Sequence record: NC_009760.1
Direction: 5' to 3' (one strand)
Length of the DNA stretch: 64,000 nt
Shown in pieces: positions 46,050 to 60,236 of this stretch (the stretch's first letter is position 1; every line of letters starts with the position of its first letter). The notes under the pieces were generated by a model. The model was given only the letters and a program-made list of their open reading frames with translations, had not been told where the DNA came from and ran no database searches. The position numbers and the translations under genes are program-made.

Positions 46050-46838
46050 ATGAATCCACAACAGATTGAAGCAATGATTCTTAGCTTCCGGAATGAGTAC
46101 AAGGAAGTATATCTCACTACAGTTGGTAACGAGGATTATATATGGAGAACATTAACACGAAAAGAACATCGTGAGATTGCGGAGTTTGCACCGGATGAAT
46201 ACAGTGCATTCGAACGTATCTGTCAGACATGCGTGCTATATCCGGTAATGGATTGGACAAGAACTCTTGCCTACTTACCGGAAGAACTTGCACCGCAGAT
46301 CATTGAGGAGTCAGGGTTTGGTAGCTTCCGTAAAGAGAAGCCCCTCCTTGACATCTTCCGAAAAGAATTAGAATCATTTGAGGCACAGGCGGAAATCATC
46401 GTCAATCGTGCCTTTCCTTATATCACATTCGAGATGATGGAGAACTGGACAAAAGAGAAGCTACTCAAGTATGTAGCGAAAGCAGAATGGCAACTCATCA
46501 ACATCGAAGGATATAAACATATGGCGCTTGTAACCGATGAGGAGATTCGTCAAATGAAGGAAGAAGAAGGAGAAGAGGTTGAGGAAACAGAAGAGGAAGA
46601 GGAGTTCGACATTATGGTCATTGCCAACGAGATGCGTAAAGCAGGGCAAGACCCAATGTTCGCATTACGCTCCCTGTACCAAAAACCAAAGACTCCTTAT
46701 GTAGAACGACCTATGATTGGTGGATTCCATCAAGTAGATACAATGATTGCAGGGACAACGGCTTGGAGAGGACGTGGCATGAACTATGGCAGATACGACG
46801 CAATACAGGAACAAGTACAGAGGGTATCTCGAAGATGA
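46050..46838 (+). CDS. Tail assembly chaperone paralog, 262 aa
   Basis: IWRTLTRKEHREI...CVLYP...ESGF matches the upstream gene. AGGTGA RBS fits ATG 46050. Confidence 0.65.
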   Translation: MNPQQIEAMILSFRNEYKEVYLTTVGNEDYIWRTLTRKEHREIAEFAPDEYSAFERICQTCVLYPVMDWTRTLAYLPEELAPQIIEESGFGSFRKEKPLLDIFRKELESFEAQAEIIVNRAFPYITFEMMENWTKEKLLKYVAKAEWQLINIEGYKHMALVTDEEIRQMKEEEGEEVEETEEEEEFDIMVIANEMRKAGQDPMFALRSLYQKPKTPYVERPMIGGFHQVDTMIAGTTAWRGRGMNYGRYDAIQEQVQRVSRR

Positions 46839-49800
46839 CGCTGACACATATCTAAGTCCCGAAATGGATCCTACAGCAAAAGTAATAATGGGAGGAATAG
46901 CCACTGTCGGTCTTGTTGCCGGTGGCTATTTAGCTTTCAAGAAGGGTGCGCTAAAGGATGTCATGCACTCTACGATTGCGAAGGCAGGTAGTTTCCGTAG
47001 AGGGAAAACAATTGCAATGAATGATGCGGTTCGGAAATGGTCACAAGATGACCGCATGGATGAACTAGGCAACGCCGTGATGAACTTAATGAAAGGCAAG
47101 CCGAAGGAAAGTAAGAAGAGTGCAAAAGAGTTTTTAGATGTCATGAGAGACTTTAAGCGTCACAAAGATGGTGCATTGCAAGAACATGCTGACCGTGTGG
47201 CTCGTATGAAGGAGTCTCAATTACGTGATAGAGAAATCGAAATCAAGACAGAGATGGCTTCTCATAAAGCGATGCAAGAACGCTTCCGTAAAGATAATAA
47301 TGATGAGAAAGCTGTACAGCGTGTATCGAAGTTATTTGACCAAACAATATTCGATAGACGTAACCTTGATAAGAAACTAGAGAAAGCTCGCGAACTGCAA
47401 ACAGGATTCCGTCATGCGACAATCAACGACCTGATTCGTTTAGGTGAGATCAACGAGGCAGAGGATTGGGTGCAAGAAGGGATTACTATCTCGACTCGTG
47501 AGTTTATGAAGAAAGCACAAGGCGAAGAGGCGATTAAGAAAGCTGGCGAGGATGGACGCAGACACTTCTTAAACAAAGTAGCTGACAACAGCATACTAAT
47601 TGATAAGAAGGATAAGATTGCTGACCTGCGTGACTTCCGTGATACATTCGAAGGTATGGTACATAGTTTAACAACAGACTTTACGATTCCACTTGTAAAG
47701 ATTAACCCGCTTCGTATGTTTTACATGGATCACTTCTTCACAGATAAATCAAAGCCATTGTTCCACGTTGCTACGTCTGATACAAAGAATCCAATTGTAA
47801 CGGGTCACAACGGTGCGCAAGGTAAACCGATTGTCTTTGCTGACGGAAAACTATTTGATGTGATGCACAAAGATGAAGCCGGTAATATGGTGACGAAACA
47901 AATCGACGGTGACTACTTCTTAGCAGACGCACAGAAGGGGCCTGTCGCACGATTACTTCGTAACATGTCCGGTATATCTATTTCAGAGTTCAGTAAGCCT
48001 GAGGCGAACGCTCCGTTCATCAAAAAGGCAAAGTATCATCTAGGTTCATTCTTTGATGTAGGTTTCCAAGATGAGCCGGGAGGACAATTAGATTTACTTG
48101 ACCCGACGAGTTGGGGTACATCCTTAATCAATACGGTAACAGGACGCTTCCGTCAAAGTGAATATGTAAAACGTATGGACTATTTATCAAATGCCTTCGG
48201 TAAAGATAAAGACTTCATCTACATGCGTAGACACATGGACTTAAAGGATGCGCCTAGCTATAAGGATTACCTGAATCAGTTCCGTGCAGGTCGAGACAAT
48301 ATGGATGAAGTAACAATGTCTACGATGTTTGGATATGGATTCTTCGAACGTCTAAACGCTACGCTGAACCAAGTGAACTTAGGTCTATCGAACAAAGCGC
48401 TCGGTTCTGCTTACGATGTATTCGAAGGACTGTTATTAAAACGTGTCGCTCCAATATGGGCTGGTATGGAACTATGGGATTACATGAACTATGAATCTGA
48501 GAATCTATTAGGGTTCCAATTCGAAGACCGATTCGCACAGATGTATGCAAACAGTTCTGTAGAGATTGCGAAGGTTCGTGATAACCTCGGCATTACAGAT
48601 TGGGCGAAAGGTGTTGCGCCGTTATTAGTAGGCGGTAGCGAACTTGCGGAGATTCCAATACTCGGTAACCTGCTAGACTGGAATGATACAGCAGAAGAAA
48701 CGCAGGACTACTGGGAGAATGGTGAAGTCGCTGTTCGTAAAGGTCGTTGGTGGCAATTAGGTAATACACCATACATCGGTGGTAAAACAGAATACTACCA
48801 ACCGAACTGGGTACGAAGAACATTAGCTGATGTGAAGTTCTCTGAATCACAGTATGGATCCCGTGAAGAATATTATGAGAATAGCTGGATGCCATCACTA
48901 CGTCATCCATTCGCACCAATCAAACACTTCTTTACTGACCAGTATCACTGGGAGGAGAAGCACTATCAAGACAGACCGTACATGATTACCGGTGGTATTC
49001 CTGAGATTGAAAACTTCCCGTTAATTGGGCCTATCTTAAATAGTACAATTGGTCAGCTATTAAAACCGCAACGTCAGATGCATATGGAAGCGTGGAACGG
49101 AGATGTACAAGGTATGCCGTTACCAGTCCCTCCTGAAACACTTGAGTATGCACAAGAGCGTACTGTGCCGATGACATTTGATAATGACGGGAATGCATCC
49201 TTCGGTTTCGCTTCAAATGAAGATAACGAGACAGATGAAGATGGCAATACGGAAATTGATCCGGGCGCAAGCGTACCTATCTTAACGCAGGGTGCTGCTT
49301 ATAATATGTTGCCTCCTGAAACGAAGGAACAAAACCAAGCCTTACAAGAGAAGCTATTCTCTTACATTACGGCTGGCGGTCAAGTGCAATTACTTCGTGG
49401 TGATCCAGGGGCAACAATATGGGATGCAACTTCTGTTATGGATACGAAGGCTCCAATGAGTACCGGTCTATTCAAACAGGAACGTCTGCCGATGAATAAG
49501 GATAAAGTAGAGACAGGTGCGCCACTAGAGACAGATGTACAACTACATCAAATGTTAGGGAACCTGCACTACAACATGACAGAGATGGGCGGATTCTACG
49601 GATTCATTACGACAAGTATCTTTGGTCAAGTCGGTAACAGCAATCCTATCCTGCAATCATCATCTGACCTGTCATCTTATACTCGTGCCTTTTGGGATAA
49701 TGACATCGGTGGTTTCGGAGGAGATGCCAATGAGATATTCCGTCGTTTCTTACCATCGGAAACATTTGAACATAAACAAAATGAAATCAACCCTGTAGCA

Positions 49801-52578
49801 AATACGATGCCGGACTGGTTACCGGGTAGCGATTACTTCGTTAACTTCCAAACAGGTGACCCCTACATCAAAGTGAAGAAGGGTGAATCACGTTTACCGG
49901 GCGAAGGGTATGAACGTTTATACAACATTGATTCTGAGAAGATGATGAAGCTAGATATTGGTGCATCCTTCATTGGATATGACGAACAACAGATTCGTGA
50001 CCATATGTTAAAGCGTGATGCCTATAAAGCAGAAGCCTTCAATAAGATTCTAAAAGCTGGTACGAAGATACATGAGCAAGTAGAGAAAGACTTACTGGCA
50101 AAAGGCGTAGCAGATGCGTCTGAGGAATATGTAAAGGATGAAGCAACAGGCATTGGCGGATTCTTCGACTTGTATGCAAACAATACAAAGCTACTCGACT
50201 GGGCGTTACAACAGAACGTAGCAGAGTTTAAATTCTATCAAACGCCACGAGAGGAAAGCGGAAGAGAACCGTCAGAAGCACTCGGCGGATTCTATGAAGA
50301 GGTCGATGTATTAAATGACATGGATAATACCCAGCGTCAAAGTTTCCTTGAACAATTCGTAGATGTGTATGGACAGGAAAGTGCGACAGTCGATATTAAG
50401 ACCCGTGGTGCAAAAGCATTCGCTAAAGAAGGGATGCACTTTGAGAACGTACAACAGCTTAACTTCTATGCAAAGCAAAAGGGTACACGCATGAACTACT
50501 TCATTGAGTTAAACCGTGACAACCCCGATGCAGGGATTAAGATATTTGCGTTCCAACAAAGTGATGACCTGCTGAACTATACGACGGAAAAAGTACAACG
50601 AGTGCGAGAAGGTATCCGTCAAGACATGGAATCCGGTAAGCTACATCGTGGTGACCTCTATGATCCAATCGACAGATTCAGAATACTAGCTGACGTTGCG
50701 CCGTACTCACAAGAGTATCGTGATATGAAAGGTCAGCTATCGAATATGAACTTAGATGAAGATGATATGAAGGAAGCGCAGGAGATTAAGAAGCAAGTAT
50801 CAGAACGAAAGCACAAGTATCGTTTCTATGACTACCGCTTCAAGACTGCGAATGTCGATGAAAAGATGGTTACAGTAGACCATGTAATCGACAGTAATAC
50901 ATTCGTATCTATGGAGTTTCCTGATAATCCAATCCGTCTGGCTGGGGTTCGTGTAAGTACCGCAAAGGATAACCCGATTGCAGACGAGGCGGCTCGTGTC
51001 ATTGGTCAAACCATCAAGGAAGGTTCGAAGATTCGTATACAGTATGATGCTGACGAGCAGAACCAAATCAAGGATGATACGTATAAGACGCTCCAAGCGG
51101 TTGTATACGACCACAAAGGACGTAACCTAAACAAATACCTTATCGACAATGAACTCGCAAAAGAGAAAGAGAATGACTACTCTGCGGCTGCGGTTCATGC
51201 ACGATTTACACCGGGTGAAATTAAGTTCGGTTCGATGTGGGAAAGCTTTGCTCATATGGATACTATCCTGCATACAAAGTTACTACAAGTTCGTTCTCCG
51301 CTTGAGTCTTATGAGCGCCGTGAAGTATACGGAAAAGACTGGCAAGAATGGACTGACCCAATTGAAGACTTCCTGATTCCTGCGATTCAGAGTTCTGCTA
51401 TTCATAATCCCGTTGTCGCAATCGGCGGTGGAGCAATTGCTGGTATGATGTTTGGTTCTCTAAAACCATCTGATATTGGCGGAGAGAAAGTTATTGGTCG
51501 TTACGGGAAGATCGTCGGCGGATTCATCGGTGCATCTGTTATGGGTATCGCTGTACTGAACCGTATGCTTACAGAAGCCATAACAGGAGAAGCATGGATT
51601 CCAGAACGTAGACAGAAAGAGCGTGACACAGAAGAATACTTCGATGTGTTAGAGTACATTAAGTACAACGCACTGTATGACCAGTATTCAAGAAAGGCAT
51701 TAAAGGAAGAAGGCATCAACGTTGAATCGTATTTAAGCAACGAGAAGTTCGAAGGAGATAAGCGTAAGCAAGATAAGACTGCCTTACAGGAAATCAAGAA
51801 AGAACTGTATCGTTCTCGTGCGAATCAAGTTGGGCCACTCATTGCGAAACTACGTGAGCAGTATGGCATCGAAGCAGAGACAAAAGAAGAAGCGATGAAA
51901 GCCATCAATAAAGAAATCACGAGTCTTACAACGCACAGGGAGATTAAAGAACTGTCTCCCATTGCAGCAAAAGCAATCATGTATAAACAGGCTGCGAAAC
52001 AAACGATGTATGGATACGAAGCAGGTGACCCAATTGCGAATATCTTATCGGCATTGCCGAAGAAAGACCGTGAGTACCTGACTCCATTTATCAAAGCGCC
52101 TGAGGAAGAAAGACAGAGAATCCTAGACATCGTGCCGAATTACATGAAACGTGTACTACAATCAGCATGGGGATTAGATGTAGATGAAAAGACACCACTG
52201 AAAGATTACTTTAAGAAACATGCACTGCCGGGTGCGAACTGGGAAGGTTGGAGAGAGAACGTATCTCTTGATGACATAAAGGTCAAGTTTGTTGACCGAG
52301 TGGGACTCGACCCGTCAGAATTTAATATATGGGAAAATGACAAACAACGTGCTGATAGGCTGAACGTACCAACGCCTGATGTGTTCAATGGACGAGAAAG
52401 TGCAGAAGAGTATTCTCGTAAGTTAAAAGAAATTTTAACAGGCTCTAATATTCATGGACTAAATATTGATATAATAGAGTCAGACAAACCGGGAACACAT
52501 ATAAATATGAACATTGCGCATGATCGACGTGACGATGTTCAGAAAATTATCAACCGTGATGGTCATTACATGTTATAA
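46786..52578 (+). CDS. Giant tape-measure-like virion protein (1930 aa) with PD-(D/E)XK nuclease and degenerate SNase domains
   Basis: Follows the chaperones. Helical, with Gly-rich hydrophobic segments. GTKIH, GFFD, VDIKT and QLNFY nuclease motifs, plus VIDSNT/IRLAG SNase-like motifs. Confidence 0.75.
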   Translation: MADTTQYRNKYRGYLEDDADTYLSPEMDPTAKVIMGGIATVGLVAGGYLAFKKGALKDVMHSTIAKAGSFRRGKTIAMNDAVRKWSQDDRMDELGNAVMNLMKGKPKESKKSAKEFLDVMRDFKRHKDGALQEHADRVARMKESQLRDREIEIKTEMASHKAMQERFRKDNNDEKAVQRVSKLFDQTIFDRRNLDKKLEKARELQTGFRHATINDLIRLGEINEAEDWVQEGITISTREFMKKAQGEEAIKKAGEDGRRHFLNKVADNSILIDKKDKIADLRDFRDTFEGMVHSLTTDFTIPLVKINPLRMFYMDHFFTDKSKPLFHVATSDTKNPIVTGHNGAQGKPIVFADGKLFDVMHKDEAGNMVTKQIDGDYFLADAQKGPVARLLRNMSGISISEFSKPEANAPFIKKAKYHLGSFFDVGFQDEPGGQLDLLDPTSWGTSLINTVTGRFRQSEYVKRMDYLSNAFGKDKDFIYMRRHMDLKDAPSYKDYLNQFRAGRDNMDEVTMSTMFGYGFFERLNATLNQVNLGLSNKALGSAYDVFEGLLLKRVAPIWAGMELWDYMNYESENLLGFQFEDRFAQMYANSSVEIAKVRDNLGITDWAKGVAPLLVGGSELAEIPILGNLLDWNDTAEETQDYWENGEVAVRKGRWWQLGNTPYIGGKTEYYQPNWVRRTLADVKFSESQYGSREEYYENSWMPSLRHPFAPIKHFFTDQYHWEEKHYQDRPYMITGGIPEIENFPLIGPILNSTIGQLLKPQRQMHMEAWNGDVQGMPLPVPPETLEYAQERTVPMTFDNDGNASFGFASNEDNETDEDGNTEIDPGASVPILTQGAAYNMLPPETKEQNQALQEKLFSYITAGGQVQLLRGDPGATIWDATSVMDTKAPMSTGLFKQERLPMNKDKVETGAPLETDVQLHQMLGNLHYNMTEMGGFYGFITTSIFGQVGNSNPILQSSSDLSSYTRAFWDNDIGGFGGDANEIFRRFLPSETFEHKQNEINPVANTMPDWLPGSDYFVNFQTGDPYIKVKKGESRLPGEGYERLYNIDSEKMMKLDIGASFIGYDEQQIRDHMLKRDAYKAEAFNKILKAGTKIHEQVEKDLLAKGVADASEEYVKDEATGIGGFFDLYANNTKLLDWALQQNVAEFKFYQTPREESGREPSEALGGFYEEVDVLNDMDNTQRQSFLEQFVDVYGQESATVDIKTRGAKAFAKEGMHFENVQQLNFYAKQKGTRMNYFIELNRDNPDAGIKIFAFQQSDDLLNYTTEKVQRVREGIRQDMESGKLHRGDLYDPIDRFRILADVAPYSQEYRDMKGQLSNMNLDEDDMKEAQEIKKQVSERKHKYRFYDYRFKTANVDEKMVTVDHVIDSNTFVSMEFPDNPIRLAGVRVSTAKDNPIADEAARVIGQTIKEGSKIRIQYDADEQNQIKDDTYKTLQAVVYDHKGRNLNKYLIDNELAKEKENDYSAAAVHARFTPGEIKFGSMWESFAHMDTILHTKLLQVRSPLESYERREVYGKDWQEWTDPIEDFLIPAIQSSAIHNPVVAIGGGAIAGMMFGSLKPSDIGGEKVIGRYGKIVGGFIGASVMGIAVLNRMLTEAITGEAWIPERRQKERDTEEYFDVLEYIKYNALYDQYSRKALKEEGINVESYLSNEKFEGDKRKQDKTALQEIKKELYRSRANQVGPLIAKLREQYGIEAETKEEAMKAINKEITSLTTHREIKELSPIAAKAIMYKQAAKQTMYGYEAGDPIANILSALPKKDREYLTPFIKAPEEERQRILDIVPNYMKRVLQSAWGLDVDEKTPLKDYFKKHALPGANWEGWRENVSLDDIKVKFVDRVGLDPSEFNIWENDKQRADRLNVPTPDVFNGRESAEEYSRKLKEILTGSNIHGLNIDIIESDKPGTHINMNIAHDRRDDVQKIINRDGHYML

Positions 52579-52604
52579 GGAGTTCGGTTGCGGACTCCTT
52601 TTTT
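52577..52604 (+). terminator. Intrinsic terminator between the two giant genes
   Basis: AAGGAGTTCG-GTTG-CGGACTCCTT followed by TTTT. Confidence 0.7.
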
Positions 52605-52622: not shown

Positions 52623-55600
52623 ATGATGAATAACTATAACGAAAACTATGCACGAGAAATATTCTTCAACCGCATGATGTACTTTATCAATGAGATAAAG
52701 ACTGGCATGGTGAAAGATGGTGTTCAGAATCCTGCGGCTGAACAACAACTATTAACACAGGCGCACAATGTGATACAAGCGCAGACGATGGCGGATACAA
52801 ACTACAAGTTCCAACTGAATAACATCTATGCATTAACACGAAACTCTGACCCGGTTACATTAGGGAATACAATGGCAAACAATATCAAGGACTTAGGTTA
52901 CTTACCTGATTCGATGAAACGTGTTGCCGAACGACAAGCGGTATCCTTTACGGAGGAACTAAACTCATTTATGTCAGGGTTACAATCGAGAGGTTTAACG
53001 AATACGTCAACATCCGTTGTAAAAGCAAATAGTATGTTAACGAATACCGAAACATTTATCCGTCATGATCTGTATCAAAGCGTGGAGGACATCGGTATCA
53101 TTGGTCGTCGTATTCATGACCAAAACTTCTATCACGATAATGTATTCGCACAAGTTAACGAGGCAATCTTCCAGTATACACAGGGAGCTGATGCAGTTGA
53201 CCAGCAAGGACGTAAAGTTGGATTCTCCGACTTAGAAAGAAGCTATCGTGATTATCTCATGACACAATCTATTACAGCGCAAGAGATGGATAGATGGGGC
53301 GTAATCGGGTATACCGACGACAAGATTAATAAGGTACTTGCCAACATTGACCATGACCCTGCTTCCTTCCGTATCTTCGCTCATGATTTACAACAAGGTG
53401 TGAATCAATACACTCGTTTAATCAAAGGCGACAGACAACAGCTAAACGGCGTGCGACAAATCTTAAAGGATGCAGAAGCGCAAAAGAAACCTTTAGTTGA
53501 AGTTATTGAGAAGTCGTATGCGAATACGAAGATCGGGCAAGAGGTATTAAAGAAAGTACGAGCAAGTGGGAATAAGACAGATGATTACGTTCGTAACATG
53601 ATGCGTAACTTCATGATGATGAAAGGCAATATGGAAGTACCGGTGGTTCTTGCATCTAGTGTCACTGACCAAACGCAACGTATGGTAGATGCTATCGGCG
53701 GAGCAATGAAAGAGATGAACAATCCGAAGAATCCTGACTATGCCTTGTATCAAAAGTACCGTGGCATCAAAGGTGAGCATACGAAGTTTATGAACGAACT
53801 GTACACGATTCGTAAAGAGGCGAACGTAGAAGGTAGCTTATACATAAACAATCAAGAGAGTTTATCTCACCGTGCAAACAGTATGAATATGAATGAAGAT
53901 ACGAACGTTGCTTACAAGAAGGAAACTCTCCCTGATGTAAACGGTGAAGACCGTCCACGATTAAATGGAGAGAAACGTTCAACACTACCATCGCAAAGCA
54001 ATGAGTATGTATCGAGAACATATGATACGAAAATGGGTTCTGTTATTCATATTGATGAAGCAAACAATACGTACTATGAATCCAATCGTCTTGCTATGAT
54101 CTTGGATGCAAATGACGAAGCGGAACGTAAACATAAACGAGCAATCGAGGAACAATTGGCAGAAGGTCGTGAACGTCCACAACAACCAATGAATAGATTC
54201 CGTAATATCTTCGCCCAGTATTTTGTAGAGACAGGAAGCGAAGAAGCAAAACGATTAGCTGGCAAAGCAGAAGCAGACCTATCGGTGGTATTCAATAAGG
54301 ATAAGTATGACCCGTCTATGCGTAACGTTATATCGGAAGCTACCTTCAATGATATTAAGGAACGTATTGCTAACAAAGAAGTATCATACGAAAACTTTAG
54401 CATCACTCGTTATCAAGCGAAAGACCGTAACCAACGTAGCGTTGATAAGTGGGAATCGGCACTAGAGAATAACGAGTCCATTCGTATGAAGGGTAGCGAG
54501 GTTGGTCACCGCATCGTTCCGAATAAAGATGGTCGTGCCGTAAGTTCAGATGGCTACGTTACATTAGAACGTGAACATGAACTGGTAGAGAATGCACGTA
54601 TCAAGATGAAGGTTGAACAGGAGAATGTACAAGACCTACTCGACCAAATGGATGAACGACGTAGACGAGCGAAGGTTACAGAAGAAGCGTCTCGTAAAGT
54701 TGTAGAAGAAATCCAAGACGACGCATTCATTAACATTCGATACAAGCAAGAGGCTGTAAGCGAAGACCTGAAAAACCGTAGTGAGTTCTTGTACGAACGA
54801 CTATCGAATACAGATAAATACTTACAAGATAATGACCTAACGAAGTACGGCATTAAAGAAGCGAACGTTCGAGCAATTGATATTGCGAATGAGTTCAATG
54901 TATATCGTAAGAATTTAACGGAATTGGATCCGGAAGGTATCGAGCATCGTAAGTCATTACCGAAGTTCTTATTACGTATGGCAGAATCTCATGCGCCGTG
55001 GATGATGGATGATACATCTGAACTGGTGAGTCATTCTGAGGTTGCACTTCGTGAAGTATTAAACCGTATGGCGAATGGTCAACAGACTATCGACTTAACG
55101 GACGAAGGTTTACTAAAAGAGTTCGATGTATATGCAGAACGTGATGCAATGGGGCAACTCACACAGCGTGCTGAAAAGCAACGTAACCAGTTCATTGAAA
55201 ACCTAGCAGGTCGTAATATCTCGCAACGACTAGAAGATAATTTATTCTTAAAAGTGCTTGGCGAGATGGTACAACAGAACTTCCAAGACAAGGGTACAAA
55301 TGGCGGAGTTGAAAGTTTAATCCGTGCGGCTGCTGATATGGCAGAGCAAAATGACCGCCGTGGGATTGCGCATGATATTCATTCCATGATTAAGTCTCCA
55401 ACAATGGAGTTCTTATTTAAAGAACACGGATACTATGCACAGGCAAGATCATTAACACCTGACCAAATTGGACGTATCATTCGTGAACGAGAAATGACAG
55501 AAGCATCAATGGTATCGTTCGAACGACTAATACAGAATGATGTGGACTTTAGCACGGCTGATGAGATATGGTCACAGCGTGGTATCAACCCAATGGAGGG

Positions 55601-58600
55601 TCAAGAAGTTCGTGTAGGCGGAGATGCTTACATCAAGCAAGCCTATGACGAAGTATATGATACTCGAATAGCGAATGCTTACGGTAATCCTGAACAAAGC
55701 GTTGTAACAAAACTAGGTAGCTTAACAGATACAGACTACAAAGGTGGTCGTGTCACAGATGAAGCTGAGATTATGGAACGCTCGAAGGCACAGCTATTAC
55801 GAGTAAAAGAAGAAGAGTTAACGATGGAGTACAAGGCAAACAAAATGAATACCTTCATCGAAGACCTGAAAACAAAAGGTGTATCCTTCAATCATATTGA
55901 TGATGTTAACACGATGCTTGATTTAGCGAAGGAACAAGGTATGGAACATATCGAGGCTACGGTTCGTGACCAACCTGCTTACATCTACAAAGGTGAGAAG
56001 GGCGATGTTATCGCTCACTTACTTCGTGATGATCGTCGTATTCAGTTAGTAAACTCCTCTGCTGGATTACAAGACAGCGTGCATGTGGACGATAAGTATC
56101 CAACAAAGTTATACGGCGGAGCGCAGATTCAATATGACTACGGTGATGGTGGTGTACCAGTTCGTCACCAATACACTTCTTACGATACGATTCAAGGTAG
56201 TGGTAAGTTTGCTCGTAGTTCCAATCCATCTGTTACGGTAGAAGGCTTCCAGCGATTCCTACGAGGTACAGATAAGATGACGTACCTTGATATAGAAACA
56301 ACAGGTTTATCGGGTTCTACTTTACCGGAAGAAGTTATTCAGCCTCTTGAGGTTCATATGCAGAAGGTTCAGTGGGATAGAAGAAACGGACGTTTATTAC
56401 AGAACGAGGATGGAGAGTTCGTGATTCGTCACGCTGGTCGTGAGACTGTTCGTGAGCAACAGCTTATCATGGGTCTGAAACCTGAGACAAAAGCATTCAT
56501 GGAAGATGTTATTGCGAACGAGGACTTCCGATTCACCGTTGGTGATAGAAGCTATGACCTGATTGATTACGAACATCACAAGGGTCGTATTAATGACTTA
56601 ATCAACAAGTCCGAAAATGCGGTAGACATTCGCAGACAAATCGTAGAGAAGCAAGATAAGTTATGGTTCCTACGTAACATTGCGAAGTATGCATTCCCTG
56701 ATACAGAAGATCATGGAGAGATTATGCGATACCAACAGTATGCAGGTAACATGGAACTTCCGAAGAGTGGTTCTGAGTTCCTGACTGTATTGCGAGAAGA
56801 TGTACAAAAGGCTGCTGATAACTTAGCGAGCGCAGGTACATCCGGTGGTGTGAAGTTCTCACCAGTGCAGGTTGGTACGACAGAAGAAGGTATGATTAAA
56901 CACGTATCTCGATTCGTCGGAAAAGGAATGCTTGCAGGTCAGAACGTAGCAGATGCCGATTGGAGTAAGTTCGTTAACATCTCAAATAAGTTAGTGCAGG
57001 AGGCGACGTTACCATTTAAGACAGCGCAGAAAGCGTTGATGGATGGTATCACAGATGTAGCCAACACACATGTACTGGATACACTTCGTGACATTCAATT
57101 AGCCGCGAACTTATCTGATGTAAATGGATTCGACAAAGCAACGAAAGCCTATATCGAACCAGTCATCAAACAGATGATGAAAGAAGATACAGGTTACAAG
57201 TCACTGAGCGACGTATTTGACGATATACGTAAAGCTAATAGCGAAGGTATGGGACATGAACGATTCACTGCTATGCTAGATTCTCTGCAAGCTGGCAAAG
57301 ATGTAGACGGATTCGATAGCAAGTTAACGATGAACCTACATCGTAGAATCGAAGACTTCGCTCACATTGATGATTTATATCAAAGTGCAAGTGAAGGAAA
57401 CTCTATGCCGAAGTGGGCGAAGAAGGGTAAACTTAACCACTTCAATGATGAGTCCACAAAAGAAATGCTAACAGGTATTGATAAGCTAGTTAAAGATGTG
57501 AATGTAACTGGTGACGAATTGCGACGTGTACAGAAGATACAAGCAGACTTACCACGACCTAAGATTGTAGAGCAAATGTACTTATACAATATGGTCAATC
57601 CAAATGCGGTAGGACGTAGTGCAGAAGCACAGTTCGAAGCAATGAATATAAAAGTAGATGATGCAACAGGTCTTCACTTGGCTCGTGCCGATGTTCGAAA
57701 CAACTTAAAGTTAATTGAACGATACGGACAAGAGTTAGGTTATGACCCTGACTTCATGTTCTTTGATACAACGCCACTACAAAAAGGTGATGTCGTTGAC
57801 CTACATACATCATTCGATGACCGTATTGCACGAGGCGTATACTCGGTAGACAGTATTGATAAAGCAAAGCATACAATGACATTCGGACGTACACTAGAAG
57901 ATGGTACAGAAGAGATGCATACGATATACGGGAAATCAAGTGCTGACCTTTCTCGTAAAGTAAACAACCACTTCGCTTTCATTGGTACAGGTGGTGACGC
58001 AGGTGCGACAGAGTTAGCTATTGACCGATTCACACAAGATAATGCAAGACGACAAGTGAATCGTGCGATGCGACATGCTGATGTATTTGATAAGTACAAC
58101 AATGAGATTGATGAACTGGTTGAGAATAACAAACTGACGCACGACCCTCTTCGTAAGATGCAAGCTATTTATGAAGAAGCACAGGATAAAGTAAATCCTG
58201 AATATGGCCCAGCGATGCATCCAAAAGATTTATCACTAGCAGAGCAAGTCGCCCTGCATAAAGATAACGTCAACTTCTTTGAAGGTACGGCGGTGCAAGA
58301 AGCATTAGATGAAACAGCATCGAATACAAAGCGTCTTGCCTTTGATAAGACGGAAGACTGGATGTTATCACCTGAGGGTAGACAGCGTTATACTTTCTTA
58401 GATGAGGTTCGCTCAATGGAAGCAGCCGGAGCATTGGATCCGAAGATGAGTAATACACTTGTGAAACAATGGAACGATGCGATTAAAGAAGAGGGATTAA
58501 GACGAGGAGCAAAACACTCTGTCTTCAACCGTGCGAATCTTGGTACACTCGATAACCGATTCGGATATATGAATGGTCGTCAGTTTGTATTAGATACATC

Positions 58601-60236
58601 TGATCCATCTCGTATCTCGAACGGATTATGGAGAATGGCAGAAGGGTTAAAAGGATTAACAAACGAACCGGATGAAGTAAAGGCAAAAGCGAAGGCTCTT
58701 AATTCCCTTGTACTTCCGTTCTTACAGGAACAAGGATTCATTAAAGAGTTTGACCAAGCGTCACCTCCGGGAATGGTCAGCGTTGTAAATCAGCTTATGA
58801 AGAATAAACATAACCTTCCGGCTTATGAAGACTATGACCCAATCGTAAGTGCTGAAATGAGTAAGAGTGATATGGGATACCAAAAGTTCTTACAAGATAA
58901 GCATGATGAAATCCTTGAACCACACCGTCAATCGTTAACGACTCTGCAACGTAGTAAGCAACAAGTGTATCAAAGTCAGTTATCGGAGTTACGTGAACAA
59001 GGACTCTATGATCCACGGCTGACAGTTGAGCCACGCATTAGTGGATTCGATTTAGATACAATGCGCTTTGGTCGTAACGGCAGTGTATCAACTATGCAAG
59101 CAGATGAACTAGGACGATTGCTACAAGTGATTGACCCAAGAACAAGTGCTGATGCAGTTGACGCACGTAATACCATTGCTGGTGAATTATTTAACCGTGC
59201 GATTGGTGATGGACGTTTCAATATCCAAGACGTTATCGACGCTGGTGAGAGCGACAGACTTGCAGCAATGCGTGCCTTAAACTGGGTGACACCTGATAAC
59301 CAAGTGAACACGAACGTTGCCACTCACTTAGTCGGTGAGCCGGGCATTCATGCAAGTGAACCTCTTGGTATGCAAAGTGTTCAGATGTTAGATAAGATTG
59401 CTGAACAAGATGTCGGAAAGTATACTAGAGATAACGGATATAGTTCTTACCAAGATAAGATTCGTAACTGGAAAGGATACGAAGATACGGATGGTAAATG
59501 GGTAGGTGCGTATGATACAAGCGGTAACCGTCTTGAATATCCGGGTCGATTCCCTGAGGCTCCCGACAATGAATCACGAAGAGTATCCACCTTCGATCCG
59601 AAGGAAGCATCTCGTGCTTCGAATGAACAGATTAAAGCTGATGGACAAGGACGACGCACGCAAACACCAACGCCGGGTGAGGGCGGTCAGAATGCTCTAC
59701 GTTACTACCGTACAGAGAACCTTGACCCGAATACCAATTACCAACACAGCAATGCGATTAGTGAAGCCCTGCATTCTGCAAAAGAGAAAGCTACTAATCT
59801 AGCATCTGAAATGTGGCACGGCACACCGGGTAAAGCAATGAAGTGGATGGCCGGTATCGGTGCTGCTGCTTTTGCGGTGAACCAGTTTATGAATGCCGCT
59901 TCTCCTGTTCAGTTGCAACGTAAACCTATGGGTCACGGCGTTGAAGGTGCAACAGGTCAAGCGAACGACGGATTAAATCAACAGCAGAACCAACCTGCTA
60001 CTGGCGGTAAAACATACGTCAATAGCGGAGAGAGTCAACCACCTGCTGGTTATGAAGTGAATGTAAAAGGTACGGCTAAAGGAGATGTCGATTACAATGC
60101 GATGCAGGAGAAGGTTAATCAGACCATCGGTAACTTCAACGCTAACATCTCGGATGACCGTTCTACATTCAACCGTTCATGGCTAGAGAAACAGTTCGGT
60201 GACTACATTGATAGAGGATACGTGGGGCAGGAATAA
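52623..60236 (+). CDS. Tape measure protein candidate (2537 aa) with insertion-split DEDDh exonuclease domain
   Basis: Longest ORF, helical, directly before the hub gene. YLDIETTGL, AGQNVADAD, VLDTL and HLARAD motifs. Confidence 0.75.
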   Translation: MMNNYNENYAREIFFNRMMYFINEIKTGMVKDGVQNPAAEQQLLTQAHNVIQAQTMADTNYKFQLNNIYALTRNSDPVTLGNTMANNIKDLGYLPDSMKRVAERQAVSFTEELNSFMSGLQSRGLTNTSTSVVKANSMLTNTETFIRHDLYQSVEDIGIIGRRIHDQNFYHDNVFAQVNEAIFQYTQGADAVDQQGRKVGFSDLERSYRDYLMTQSITAQEMDRWGVIGYTDDKINKVLANIDHDPASFRIFAHDLQQGVNQYTRLIKGDRQQLNGVRQILKDAEAQKKPLVEVIEKSYANTKIGQEVLKKVRASGNKTDDYVRNMMRNFMMMKGNMEVPVVLASSVTDQTQRMVDAIGGAMKEMNNPKNPDYALYQKYRGIKGEHTKFMNELYTIRKEANVEGSLYINNQESLSHRANSMNMNEDTNVAYKKETLPDVNGEDRPRLNGEKRSTLPSQSNEYVSRTYDTKMGSVIHIDEANNTYYESNRLAMILDANDEAERKHKRAIEEQLAEGRERPQQPMNRFRNIFAQYFVETGSEEAKRLAGKAEADLSVVFNKDKYDPSMRNVISEATFNDIKERIANKEVSYENFSITRYQAKDRNQRSVDKWESALENNESIRMKGSEVGHRIVPNKDGRAVSSDGYVTLEREHELVENARIKMKVEQENVQDLLDQMDERRRRAKVTEEASRKVVEEIQDDAFINIRYKQEAVSEDLKNRSEFLYERLSNTDKYLQDNDLTKYGIKEANVRAIDIANEFNVYRKNLTELDPEGIEHRKSLPKFLLRMAESHAPWMMDDTSELVSHSEVALREVLNRMANGQQTIDLTDEGLLKEFDVYAERDAMGQLTQRAEKQRNQFIENLAGRNISQRLEDNLFLKVLGEMVQQNFQDKGTNGGVESLIRAAADMAEQNDRRGIAHDIHSMIKSPTMEFLFKEHGYYAQARSLTPDQIGRIIREREMTEASMVSFERLIQNDVDFSTADEIWSQRGINPMEGQEVRVGGDAYIKQAYDEVYDTRIANAYGNPEQSVVTKLGSLTDTDYKGGRVTDEAEIMERSKAQLLRVKEEELTMEYKANKMNTFIEDLKTKGVSFNHIDDVNTMLDLAKEQGMEHIEATVRDQPAYIYKGEKGDVIAHLLRDDRRIQLVNSSAGLQDSVHVDDKYPTKLYGGAQIQYDYGDGGVPVRHQYTSYDTIQGSGKFARSSNPSVTVEGFQRFLRGTDKMTYLDIETTGLSGSTLPEEVIQPLEVHMQKVQWDRRNGRLLQNEDGEFVIRHAGRETVREQQLIMGLKPETKAFMEDVIANEDFRFTVGDRSYDLIDYEHHKGRINDLINKSENAVDIRRQIVEKQDKLWFLRNIAKYAFPDTEDHGEIMRYQQYAGNMELPKSGSEFLTVLREDVQKAADNLASAGTSGGVKFSPVQVGTTEEGMIKHVSRFVGKGMLAGQNVADADWSKFVNISNKLVQEATLPFKTAQKALMDGITDVANTHVLDTLRDIQLAANLSDVNGFDKATKAYIEPVIKQMMKEDTGYKSLSDVFDDIRKANSEGMGHERFTAMLDSLQAGKDVDGFDSKLTMNLHRRIEDFAHIDDLYQSASEGNSMPKWAKKGKLNHFNDESTKEMLTGIDKLVKDVNVTGDELRRVQKIQADLPRPKIVEQMYLYNMVNPNAVGRSAEAQFEAMNIKVDDATGLHLARADVRNNLKLIERYGQELGYDPDFMFFDTTPLQKGDVVDLHTSFDDRIARGVYSVDSIDKAKHTMTFGRTLEDGTEEMHTIYGKSSADLSRKVNNHFAFIGTGGDAGATELAIDRFTQDNARRQVNRAMRHADVFDKYNNEIDELVENNKLTHDPLRKMQAIYEEAQDKVNPEYGPAMHPKDLSLAEQVALHKDNVNFFEGTAVQEALDETASNTKRLAFDKTEDWMLSPEGRQRYTFLDEVRSMEAAGALDPKMSNTLVKQWNDAIKEEGLRRGAKHSVFNRANLGTLDNRFGYMNGRQFVLDTSDPSRISNGLWRMAEGLKGLTNEPDEVKAKAKALNSLVLPFLQEQGFIKEFDQASPPGMVSVVNQLMKNKHNLPAYEDYDPIVSAEMSKSDMGYQKFLQDKHDEILEPHRQSLTTLQRSKQQVYQSQLSELREQGLYDPRLTVEPRISGFDLDTMRFGRNGSVSTMQADELGRLLQVIDPRTSADAVDARNTIAGELFNRAIGDGRFNIQDVIDAGESDRLAAMRALNWVTPDNQVNTNVATHLVGEPGIHASEPLGMQSVQMLDKIAEQDVGKYTRDNGYSSYQDKIRNWKGYEDTDGKWVGAYDTSGNRLEYPGRFPEAPDNESRRVSTFDPKEASRASNEQIKADGQGRRTQTPTPGEGGQNALRYYRTENLDPNTNYQHSNAISEALHSAKEKATNLASEMWHGTPGKAMKWMAGIGAAAFAVNQFMNAASPVQLQRKPMGHGVEGATGQANDGLNQQQNQPATGGKTYVNSGESQPPAGYEVNVKGTAKGDVDYNAMQEKVNQTIGNFNANISDDRSTFNRSWLEKQFGDYIDRGYVGQE

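Follow-up and report, generated by a model that had tools for sequence, protein, structure and literature searches.

A probable DEDDh exonuclease fold, split by two insertions, within the candidate tape measure protein gp146 of Bacillus phage 0305phi8-36

The 64,000-nucleotide stretch of record NC_009760.1 analysed here (the window) is the left part of the genome of 0305phi8-36, a jumbo myophage of Bacillus thuringiensis (EF583821, 218,948 bp), and is numbered as in that record. Within its run of tail genes—sheath gp139, tube gp140/141, gp142, the chaperone-like gp143/144, gp145, gp146, the hub gp147 with its wall-degrading domains, and then the baseplate genes—we focused on gp146, which is present in the virion according to the mass spectrometry annotation of the record. 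An earlier reading of this DNA made without database searches (the sequence-only reading) had proposed that a DnaQ-like DEDDh 3'-5' exonuclease, split by large insertions, lies inside this protein, and had guessed that the domain might already have been partly noted in the original genome description. That guess found no support: GenBank labels gp146 'hypothetical tape measure protein' and nothing further, and Hardies et al. 2007, who assigned the tape-measure role mainly from tail length, name no domain in it (PMC2147016). The gene and the proposed domain are placed as follows.

52623..60236, + strand: gp146 (ORF146), 2537 amino acids (aa), from the open reading frame list; 100% match to EF583821 ORF146.
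56253..57749, + strand: predicted DEDDh (DnaQ-like) exonuclease fold including two insertions, residues 1211-1709.

All four strings on which the proposal was built are present in gp146 (translation of 56280-57710): YLDIETTGL at residues 1221-1229, LAGQNVADADW at 1437-1447, VLDTL at 1484-1488, and LHLARADV at 1684-1691. The nucleotide coordinates given for their key residues are likewise exact (D1223/E1225, 56289-56297; D1446, 56958; H1685/D1690, 57675-57692). The pattern of the first motif (ExoI), D-[ILVMFT]-E-[TS]-[TS]-G-[LMVI], has a single match when the whole window is translated in six frames. Among 20000 composition-preserving shuffles of gp146, it turned up in 15, and the three motifs in the correct order in 0. 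Chance does not account for these motifs. A fortuitous resemblance in a long acidic protein with no exonuclease fold could draw on the Asp and Glu content of gp146 (~8% each) and on the silence of Pfam, PHROGs, and NCBIfam; it is refuted by the conservation and fold results given below, and we regard its probability as negligible.

We looked for relatives of gp146 among 1.84 billion representative proteins, using a word-indexed search together with an exhaustive HMMER scan, and obtained 17 proteins and no other credible match. Each is a giant of 2466-2959 aa that its source leaves unnamed or calls 'hypothetical', and most are encoded on contigs of ~206-213 kb; across this collection, the DEDDh domain of the family is always found within such giants and never alone. 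No relatives were found in GenBank phages (other than 0305phi8-36), PLSDB plasmids, GTDB representative genomes, or IMG/VR. Over the domain, the 17 homologues range from 96% down to 22% identity to gp146, and D1223, E1225, T1227, Q1240, P1241, E1243, G1439, Q1440, N1441, A1445, D1446, E1650, H1685, and D1690 are invariant in all 18 sequences. The motif residues are conserved in these homologues, with one exception: VLDTL, put forward as the active-site motif supplying D1486, is not conserved in homologues and sits in a variable helical insertion. As judged from the alignment, the DEDDh set of gp146 is instead D1223, E1225, D1446, and D1690 with H1685, and the domain is of the DEDDh rather than the DEDDy type because its third motif (ExoIII) has a His.

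The wide spacing of the motifs is also real. It amounts to 216 aa between ExoI and ExoII and 244 aa between ExoII and ExoIII in gp146 (214-285 and 162-276 aa across the family), as against ~91 and ~64 aa in the epsilon subunit (DnaQ) of Escherichia coli DNA polymerase III (Pol III), for which residue numbers in the N-terminal part were compared with the translated dnaQ gene. Across the whole of gp146, invariant positions are packed most densely in residues 1150-1450 and 1650-1740, and identity differs among the segments of the domain:

Three core segments: 65% in nearer homologues, 33-38% in far ones.
Insertion I: 50% in nearer homologues, 30% in far ones.
Insertion II: 17% in nearer homologues, 12% in far ones.

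This pattern is the one expected of purifying selection on a putative catalytic core that is interrupted by a tolerant spacer.

We modelled residues 1150-1780 of gp146 with AlphaFold2 from the 18-sequence alignment and with no templates, obtaining a mean predicted local distance difference test score (pLDDT) of 84.4 and a predicted template modelling score (pTM) of 0.76. In the model, five strands make up the sheet of an RNase H-like alpha/beta fold, and the core elements run in the order beta1-beta2-beta3-alphaA...beta4-alphaB...beta5-alphaC. In model numbering, beta1 covers 70-77 (D74/E76 = D1223/E1225) and beta2 92-100, followed by the beta3 region (119-134) and a helix (138-150); beta4 (287-290) leads into a 56-residue helix beginning at ExoII, and beta5 (498-501) precedes the final helix (537-557), which starts from H536/D541 (= H1685/D1690). 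The core is divided into three parts, comprising residues 1211-1301 with ExoI, 1411-1461 with ExoII, and 1643-1709 with beta5 and ExoIII, and the two insertions, which are lineage-specific, add ~300 residues to the fold. The elements of the domain and its flanks are listed below.

56130..56252, + strand: N-terminal extension, residues 1170-1210, with the block G-G-x-P...Q-G-S-G...N-P-S-V-T, from alignments; P1202 invariant; 60% identity in near and 29% in far homologues.
56283..56309, + strand: ExoI, Y-L-D-I-E-T-T-G-L (D1223, E1225), on strand beta1; Asp and Glu in 18/18 sequences; model strand 70-77 with pLDDT ~92; paired by hhalign with epsilon D12/E14.
56340..56351, + strand: Q-P-L-E on strand beta2 (Q1240, P1241, and E1243 invariant), matching the 'I-I-E-I' strand of DnaQ-like enzymes.
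56526..56852, + strand: insertion I, residues ~1302-1410, a helical/beta subdomain, conserved and modelled with confidence, between the beta3/alphaA region and beta4; pLDDT 81-97; 107-162 aa across the family; holds an invariant L-R-N-I-A-K-Y motif (L1350, N1352, K1355; 56670-56693).
56937..56960, + strand: ExoII, G-Q-N-V-A-D-A-D (N1441, D1446), at the end of beta4 and start of helix alphaB; G-Q-N...A-D in 18/18 sequences; model strand 287-290, helix from 293.
57006..57548, + strand: insertion II, residues ~1462-1642, a helical arm prolonging alphaB and returning to beta5; model helices 293-348 through 461-493 with pLDDT 60-86; 100-208 aa across the family; fast-evolving and the least conserved part of gp146; contains VLDTL (57072-57086).
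57561..57575, + strand: strand beta5, with E1650 invariant and Q1651 nearly so; model strand 498-501; paired by global hhalign with epsilon 'DSL'.
57675..57692, + strand: ExoIII, H-L-A-R-A-D (H1685, D1690), at the start of the last core helix; H-x-[AG]-x-x-D in 18/18 sequences; model helix 537-557; its register with epsilon H162/D167 comes from the ends of structural alignments.
57792..57929, + strand: small all-beta domain after the exonuclease core, residues 1724-1769; model strands 575-620 with pLDDT 76-90; G1738 and Y1740 invariant.

In structural terms, strand beta5 with E1650 matches the 'D-S/T-L' segment of DnaQ-like enzymes, which the sequence-only reading had sought in VLDTL.

An exhaustive comparison of the model with 48,161 chains of the PDB placed DEDD exonuclease or exonuclease-like domains at every rank from 1 to 43, including those of the DNA polymerase entry 9qpc (1213 residues, possibly PolC), epsilon, DinG-N, Cas2-DEDDh, RNase T, Cap18, ExoI, ExoX, REXO2, and TREX1. 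Relative to both 9qpc and epsilon, gp146 has two inserted subdomains. In the ESM Atlas, the closest shapes were RNase_T clusters, many of them from phages, with TM values by hit of 0.58-0.78.

One cluster from the ESM Atlas is recorded here apart from the question of gp146. It consists of phage proteins of ~555 aa that join a domain like 2'-5' RNA ligases and Acb1 (an anti-CBASS phosphodiesterase) to an RNase_T domain, a combination that might serve counter-defence in two steps, the ring being opened and then chewed.

Sequence profiles gave weaker signals. As had been anticipated, the domain is hidden from standard searches: Pfam, PHROGs, and NCBIfam returned no hits for whole gp146, for the domain, or for its three motif-bearing pieces. 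The Pfam RNase_T model aligned below threshold over the ExoIII end of two homologues (14.6-15.8 bits, E 0.02-0.05), and a profile hidden Markov model of the domain searched against PDB sequences retrieved helical noise and a non-significant entry named exodeoxyribonuclease III (E 1.3, ExoI motif only). When the insertion-trimmed core was aligned globally by hhalign to five E. coli DEDDh domains, ExoI, beta2, the ExoII Asn, the beta5 'D-S-L' position (E1650), and ExoIII lined up, and the ExoII Asp was shifted by one residue; we treat this alignment as supportive and not as rigorous because the core was trimmed by hand. Sequence-level support for an exonuclease appears thin but consistent, and with the structural comparisons it leaves us highly confident that residues ~1211-1709 form a true DEDDh fold of the DnaQ/RNase T superfamily.

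We consider it likely that the domain is also catalytically active, as predicted from its residues: D1223, E1225, D1446, and D1690, with H1685 as general base, would form a two-metal site of the kind used by metal-dependent 3'-5' exonucleases. The fold could instead be real and non-catalytic, serving as a module that binds 3' ends or single-stranded DNA (ssDNA) and either holds the leading genome end or steers it, or as a folded spacer in a length-determining protein. Such a role appears quite improbable, and binding alone is disfavoured because all of the catalytic residues are invariant: the five, together with the substrate-contacting Asn, are unchanged in 18 proteins (22-50% identity) whose surrounding sequence drifts to 12%, whereas relatives that only bind normally lose their catalytic residues. 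The domain moreover lies in the middle of the protein and not at the end expected to touch DNA.

The gene of gp146 lies between those of the tail assembly chaperones and the baseplate hub, with gp145 intervening after the chaperones, and the arrangement is the same in two distant loci; the length of the protein varies little within the family. At 0.15 nm per residue, 2537 aa would span ~380 nm, compared with a tail of ~500 nm (PMC3357382), and ~630 central residues are globular. ESM Atlas feature searches with the N- and C-terminal parts of gp146 gave scores of at most 0.71.

An alternative is that the exonuclease works in the infected cell before assembly—in replication, recombination, proofreading for the Pol III alpha subunit, or breakdown of host DNA—with its presence in the virion being incidental and some other protein perhaps serving as the tape measure. 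Genes for Pol III alpha and beta are present in the phage (PMC2147016), but Pfam RNase_T (PF00929) has no match in the whole 219-kb genome, so that the gp146 domain is the sole DnaQ-like fold detected so far in 0305phi8-36; in addition, the gene directly after the chaperones is gp145 and not gp146. A role in intracellular replication or proofreading is nonetheless disfavoured because the domain occurs only in giant proteins and never alone. All 17 relatives share this form, with the two loci examined having the giant in the same tail-gene slot, and gp146 itself is a mass-spectrometry-confirmed virion component encoded among virion and tail genes; such genes are normally expressed late, and functions in replication are presumably required early. 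We judge this alternative very unlikely.

We favour, at a probability of roughly 50%, the reading that gp146 carries an active exonuclease delivered from the virion; that the domain does its work after such delivery is, taken alone, an even call. Under this reading, gp146 would be kept inside or along the lumen of the tail, probably in an incompletely folded state, and contraction of the sheath would expel it ahead of the DNA, an expectation we hold because the tape measure proteins of studied phages leave the particle in this way. Storage in an unfolded or extended state, with folding after exit, is probable because a folded module of ~500 residues should not fit as a multimer into a lumen of ~4 nm. 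On the cell side, the exonuclease module would fold or refold and strip nucleotides from free 3' ends by two-metal hydrolysis. DNA 3' ends are our tentative choice of substrate, and a stoichiometric job on DNA ends at the site of entry is favoured because few copies are likely to enter per infection. The first candidate task would be resection of the phage's own 6.5-kb terminal repeats, leading to annealing into circles or concatemers; the second would be clearance of host-made linear DNA or ssDNA. Resection of terminal repeats in the 3'-5' direction leaves complementary single strands that are able to anneal, which is the basis of the classical exonuclease III test for terminal redundancy. 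The genome is non-permuted, with a terminal repeat of 6.479 kb (PMC3357382).

Several points weigh against a virion-delivered, active exonuclease. At the level of profiles, gp146 is silent with Pfam RNase_T even at E 10 and no family member reaches the 24-bit cut-off, a failure we attribute to the insertions and to divergence and which concerns the reach of the model rather than the fold; local hhalign comparisons with epsilon or with the five E. coli DEDDh domains align ExoI only. ExoII has a Gln where most DnaQ-like enzymes carry a His, and its Asn-Asp spacing is one residue longer than in epsilon. In the structural model, we infer from the register of the structural alignments that the five catalytic residues meet in one site, and the H1685 loop is of low confidence (pLDDT ~63); the matching His loop is mobile in known DEDDh enzymes. 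The tape-measure assignment draws on gene position and length only (PMC2147016), and whole gp146 matches no tape measure protein (TMP) family in Pfam or PHROGs. Storage and refolding are both assumptions, given a tail-tube lumen that would be ~4 nm wide by comparison with known tail structures, and an exonuclease entering just before the phage's linear DNA could damage that DNA.

The sequence-only reading had foreseen a virion-delivered nuclease acting on host nucleic acids, on defence oligonucleotides, or on the phage ends, a proposal that is plausible. The main rival to our reading is that the active exonuclease is delivered as a weapon of counter-defence or host takeover, degrading nucleic acids with free 3' ends that belong to the host or are made by its defences. 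Candidate targets would be ssDNA or cDNA produced by retron or DRT-type systems, signalling oligonucleotides once linearised, and any host DNA in which gp145 has made nicks. DEDDh enzymes require a free 3' end and, as is established for the family, cannot open cyclic oligonucleotides, which makes these poor substrate candidates. The few molecules that enter per infection would also be weak against a chromosome, the phage's own DNA would somehow have to be spared, and no defence-related neighbour or target has been identified. On balance, we consider a weapon of this kind unlikely.

Work of the exonuclease on DNA ends may also involve the protein encoded directly upstream, gp145, whose features are as follows.

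46786..52578, + strand: gp145, a 1930-aa virion protein by annotation; directly upstream of gp146 and its conserved partner in each locus examined.
49783..50685, + strand: residues 1000-1300 of gp145, with PD-(D/E)XK-like motifs G-G-F-[FY]-D, D-x-K-T-R, and H-F-E-N-x-Q-Q-x-N-F-Y, conserved in 3/3 sequences.

These strings are similar to the RecB/Cas4-type nuclease motifs II, III, and Q-x-x-x-Y, making gp145 a candidate nuclease; the sole outside support is a match to the PD-(D/E)XK Pfam family RAI1 below threshold (E 0.075) in one member. The protein is 54% identical to its distant counterparts, compared with 22-26% for gp146 in the same phages. Its RecB/Cas4-like motifs may take part in either of the tasks suggested for the exonuclease, and gp145 and gp146 could then form a nuclease pair, stored in the virion and shot in ahead of the genome, that resects the terminal repeats for rapid circularisation or destroys DNA made by defences. 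We hold this pairing to be doubtful.

The proposed domain can be set against several known systems. Stand-alone DEDDh enzymes are known to act on ssDNA, RNA 3' tails, and dinucleotides, and in spacer trimming; of ExoI (SbcB), ExoX, RNase T, Orn/REXO2, TREX1, Cap18, Cas2-DEDDh, and the N-terminal domain of DinG, none has the two insertions of gp146 or lies in a structural protein. Polymerase proofreading exonucleases differ in that the gp146 domain is placed midway in a 2537-aa virion protein and is no part of a polymerase, has the ExoII Gln in place of His, and falls below Pfam RNase_T detection. Large packaged proteins that are injected with or before the DNA and that act on or protect nucleic acids early in infection include the N4 virion RNA polymerase, the P1 Dar proteins, and T4 gp2; these are head-internal or bound to DNA ends and have other folds, and, unlike gp146, none is a DEDDh protein or comes from the tape-measure slot.

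Enzymatic tape measures, such as that of Staphylococcus phage phiIPLA35, offer a parallel in layout, with a catalytic module within a very long protein that is encoded upstream of the baseplate hub and that would exit the virion. Unlike gp146, however, known examples (peptidoglycan hydrolase, muramidase) act on the cell wall, and gp146 belongs to no recognised TMP family. Beyond their role in tail length, tape measures are, to our knowledge, known for cell-wall or membrane-active modules only. The muramidase of the phiIPLA35 TMP is cited in PMC8570332. No relevant paper emerged when the literature was searched for tape measures bearing an exonuclease, DEDDh, or nuclease domain, and the jumbo-phage survey of Iyer et al. 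mentions no such tape measure (PMC7824862). What is new is the form and the place: a DnaQ-like fold split by two insertions, inside a virion protein of the tape-measure slot.

If delivery from the virion is correct, the phage would use its tail to introduce an enzyme of nucleic acids ahead of all gene expression, and if gp145 and gp146 indeed act as a pair, they would be the first proteins of the tail lumen or tape measure to serve as nucleic-acid enzymes rather than as rulers, channel formers, or wall-degrading enzymes. The question bears on the role of ejected tail proteins in the cell, on the survival and circularisation of linear, terminally redundant genomes in the first seconds of infection, and on counter-defence prepackaged in the tail. 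It also illustrates that a textbook fold, once split by insertions, can escape Pfam, PHROGs, and NCBIfam.

Toward its C terminus, gp146 has one further conserved feature.

59844..59891, + strand: Gly/Ala-rich hydrophobic segment W-M-A-G-I-G-A-A-A-F-A, residues 2408-2423; W2408, G2411, G2413, A2416, and A2418 invariant.

This is the sole hydrophobic stretch in the protein, homologues show weak DUF1206 matches there, and it is possibly a membrane-active element. A model of the C-terminal 800 residues consists of helical bundles and a disordered tail, with low confidence for the ~200-residue region that holds the segment.

Two minor observations concern the starts of genes. The ATG of M1219 (56277), preceded by GAGG 10 nt upstream (56263-56279) and standing two codons before ExoI, was considered as the start of a nested gene and rejected, as the Met is not conserved in homologues; its resemblance to an internal start is probably a coincidence. 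A strong terminator-like hairpin (10-bp stem and T run) lies at 52577-52600, sharing two bases with the end of the gp145 stop codon and standing ahead of the gp146 start at 52623, and could lower the expression of gp146 relative to that of gp145.

The neighbourhood of gp146 is shared by two distant relatives on contigs of ~210 kb, in which two chaperone-sized genes are followed by a giant of ~1850 aa, by the giant with the DEDDh domain, by a hub that has peptidoglycan-hydrolase domains and measures ~1800 aa, and by the baseplate genes. One of the two is CP186007.1 (206,502 bp), where a distant relative of the whole tail module lies on what is annotated as a Paenibacillus sp. EC2-1 plasmid; this suggests either that a jumbo phage like 0305phi8-36 persists there as an episome or that the genome of a phage was submitted under the label of a plasmid.

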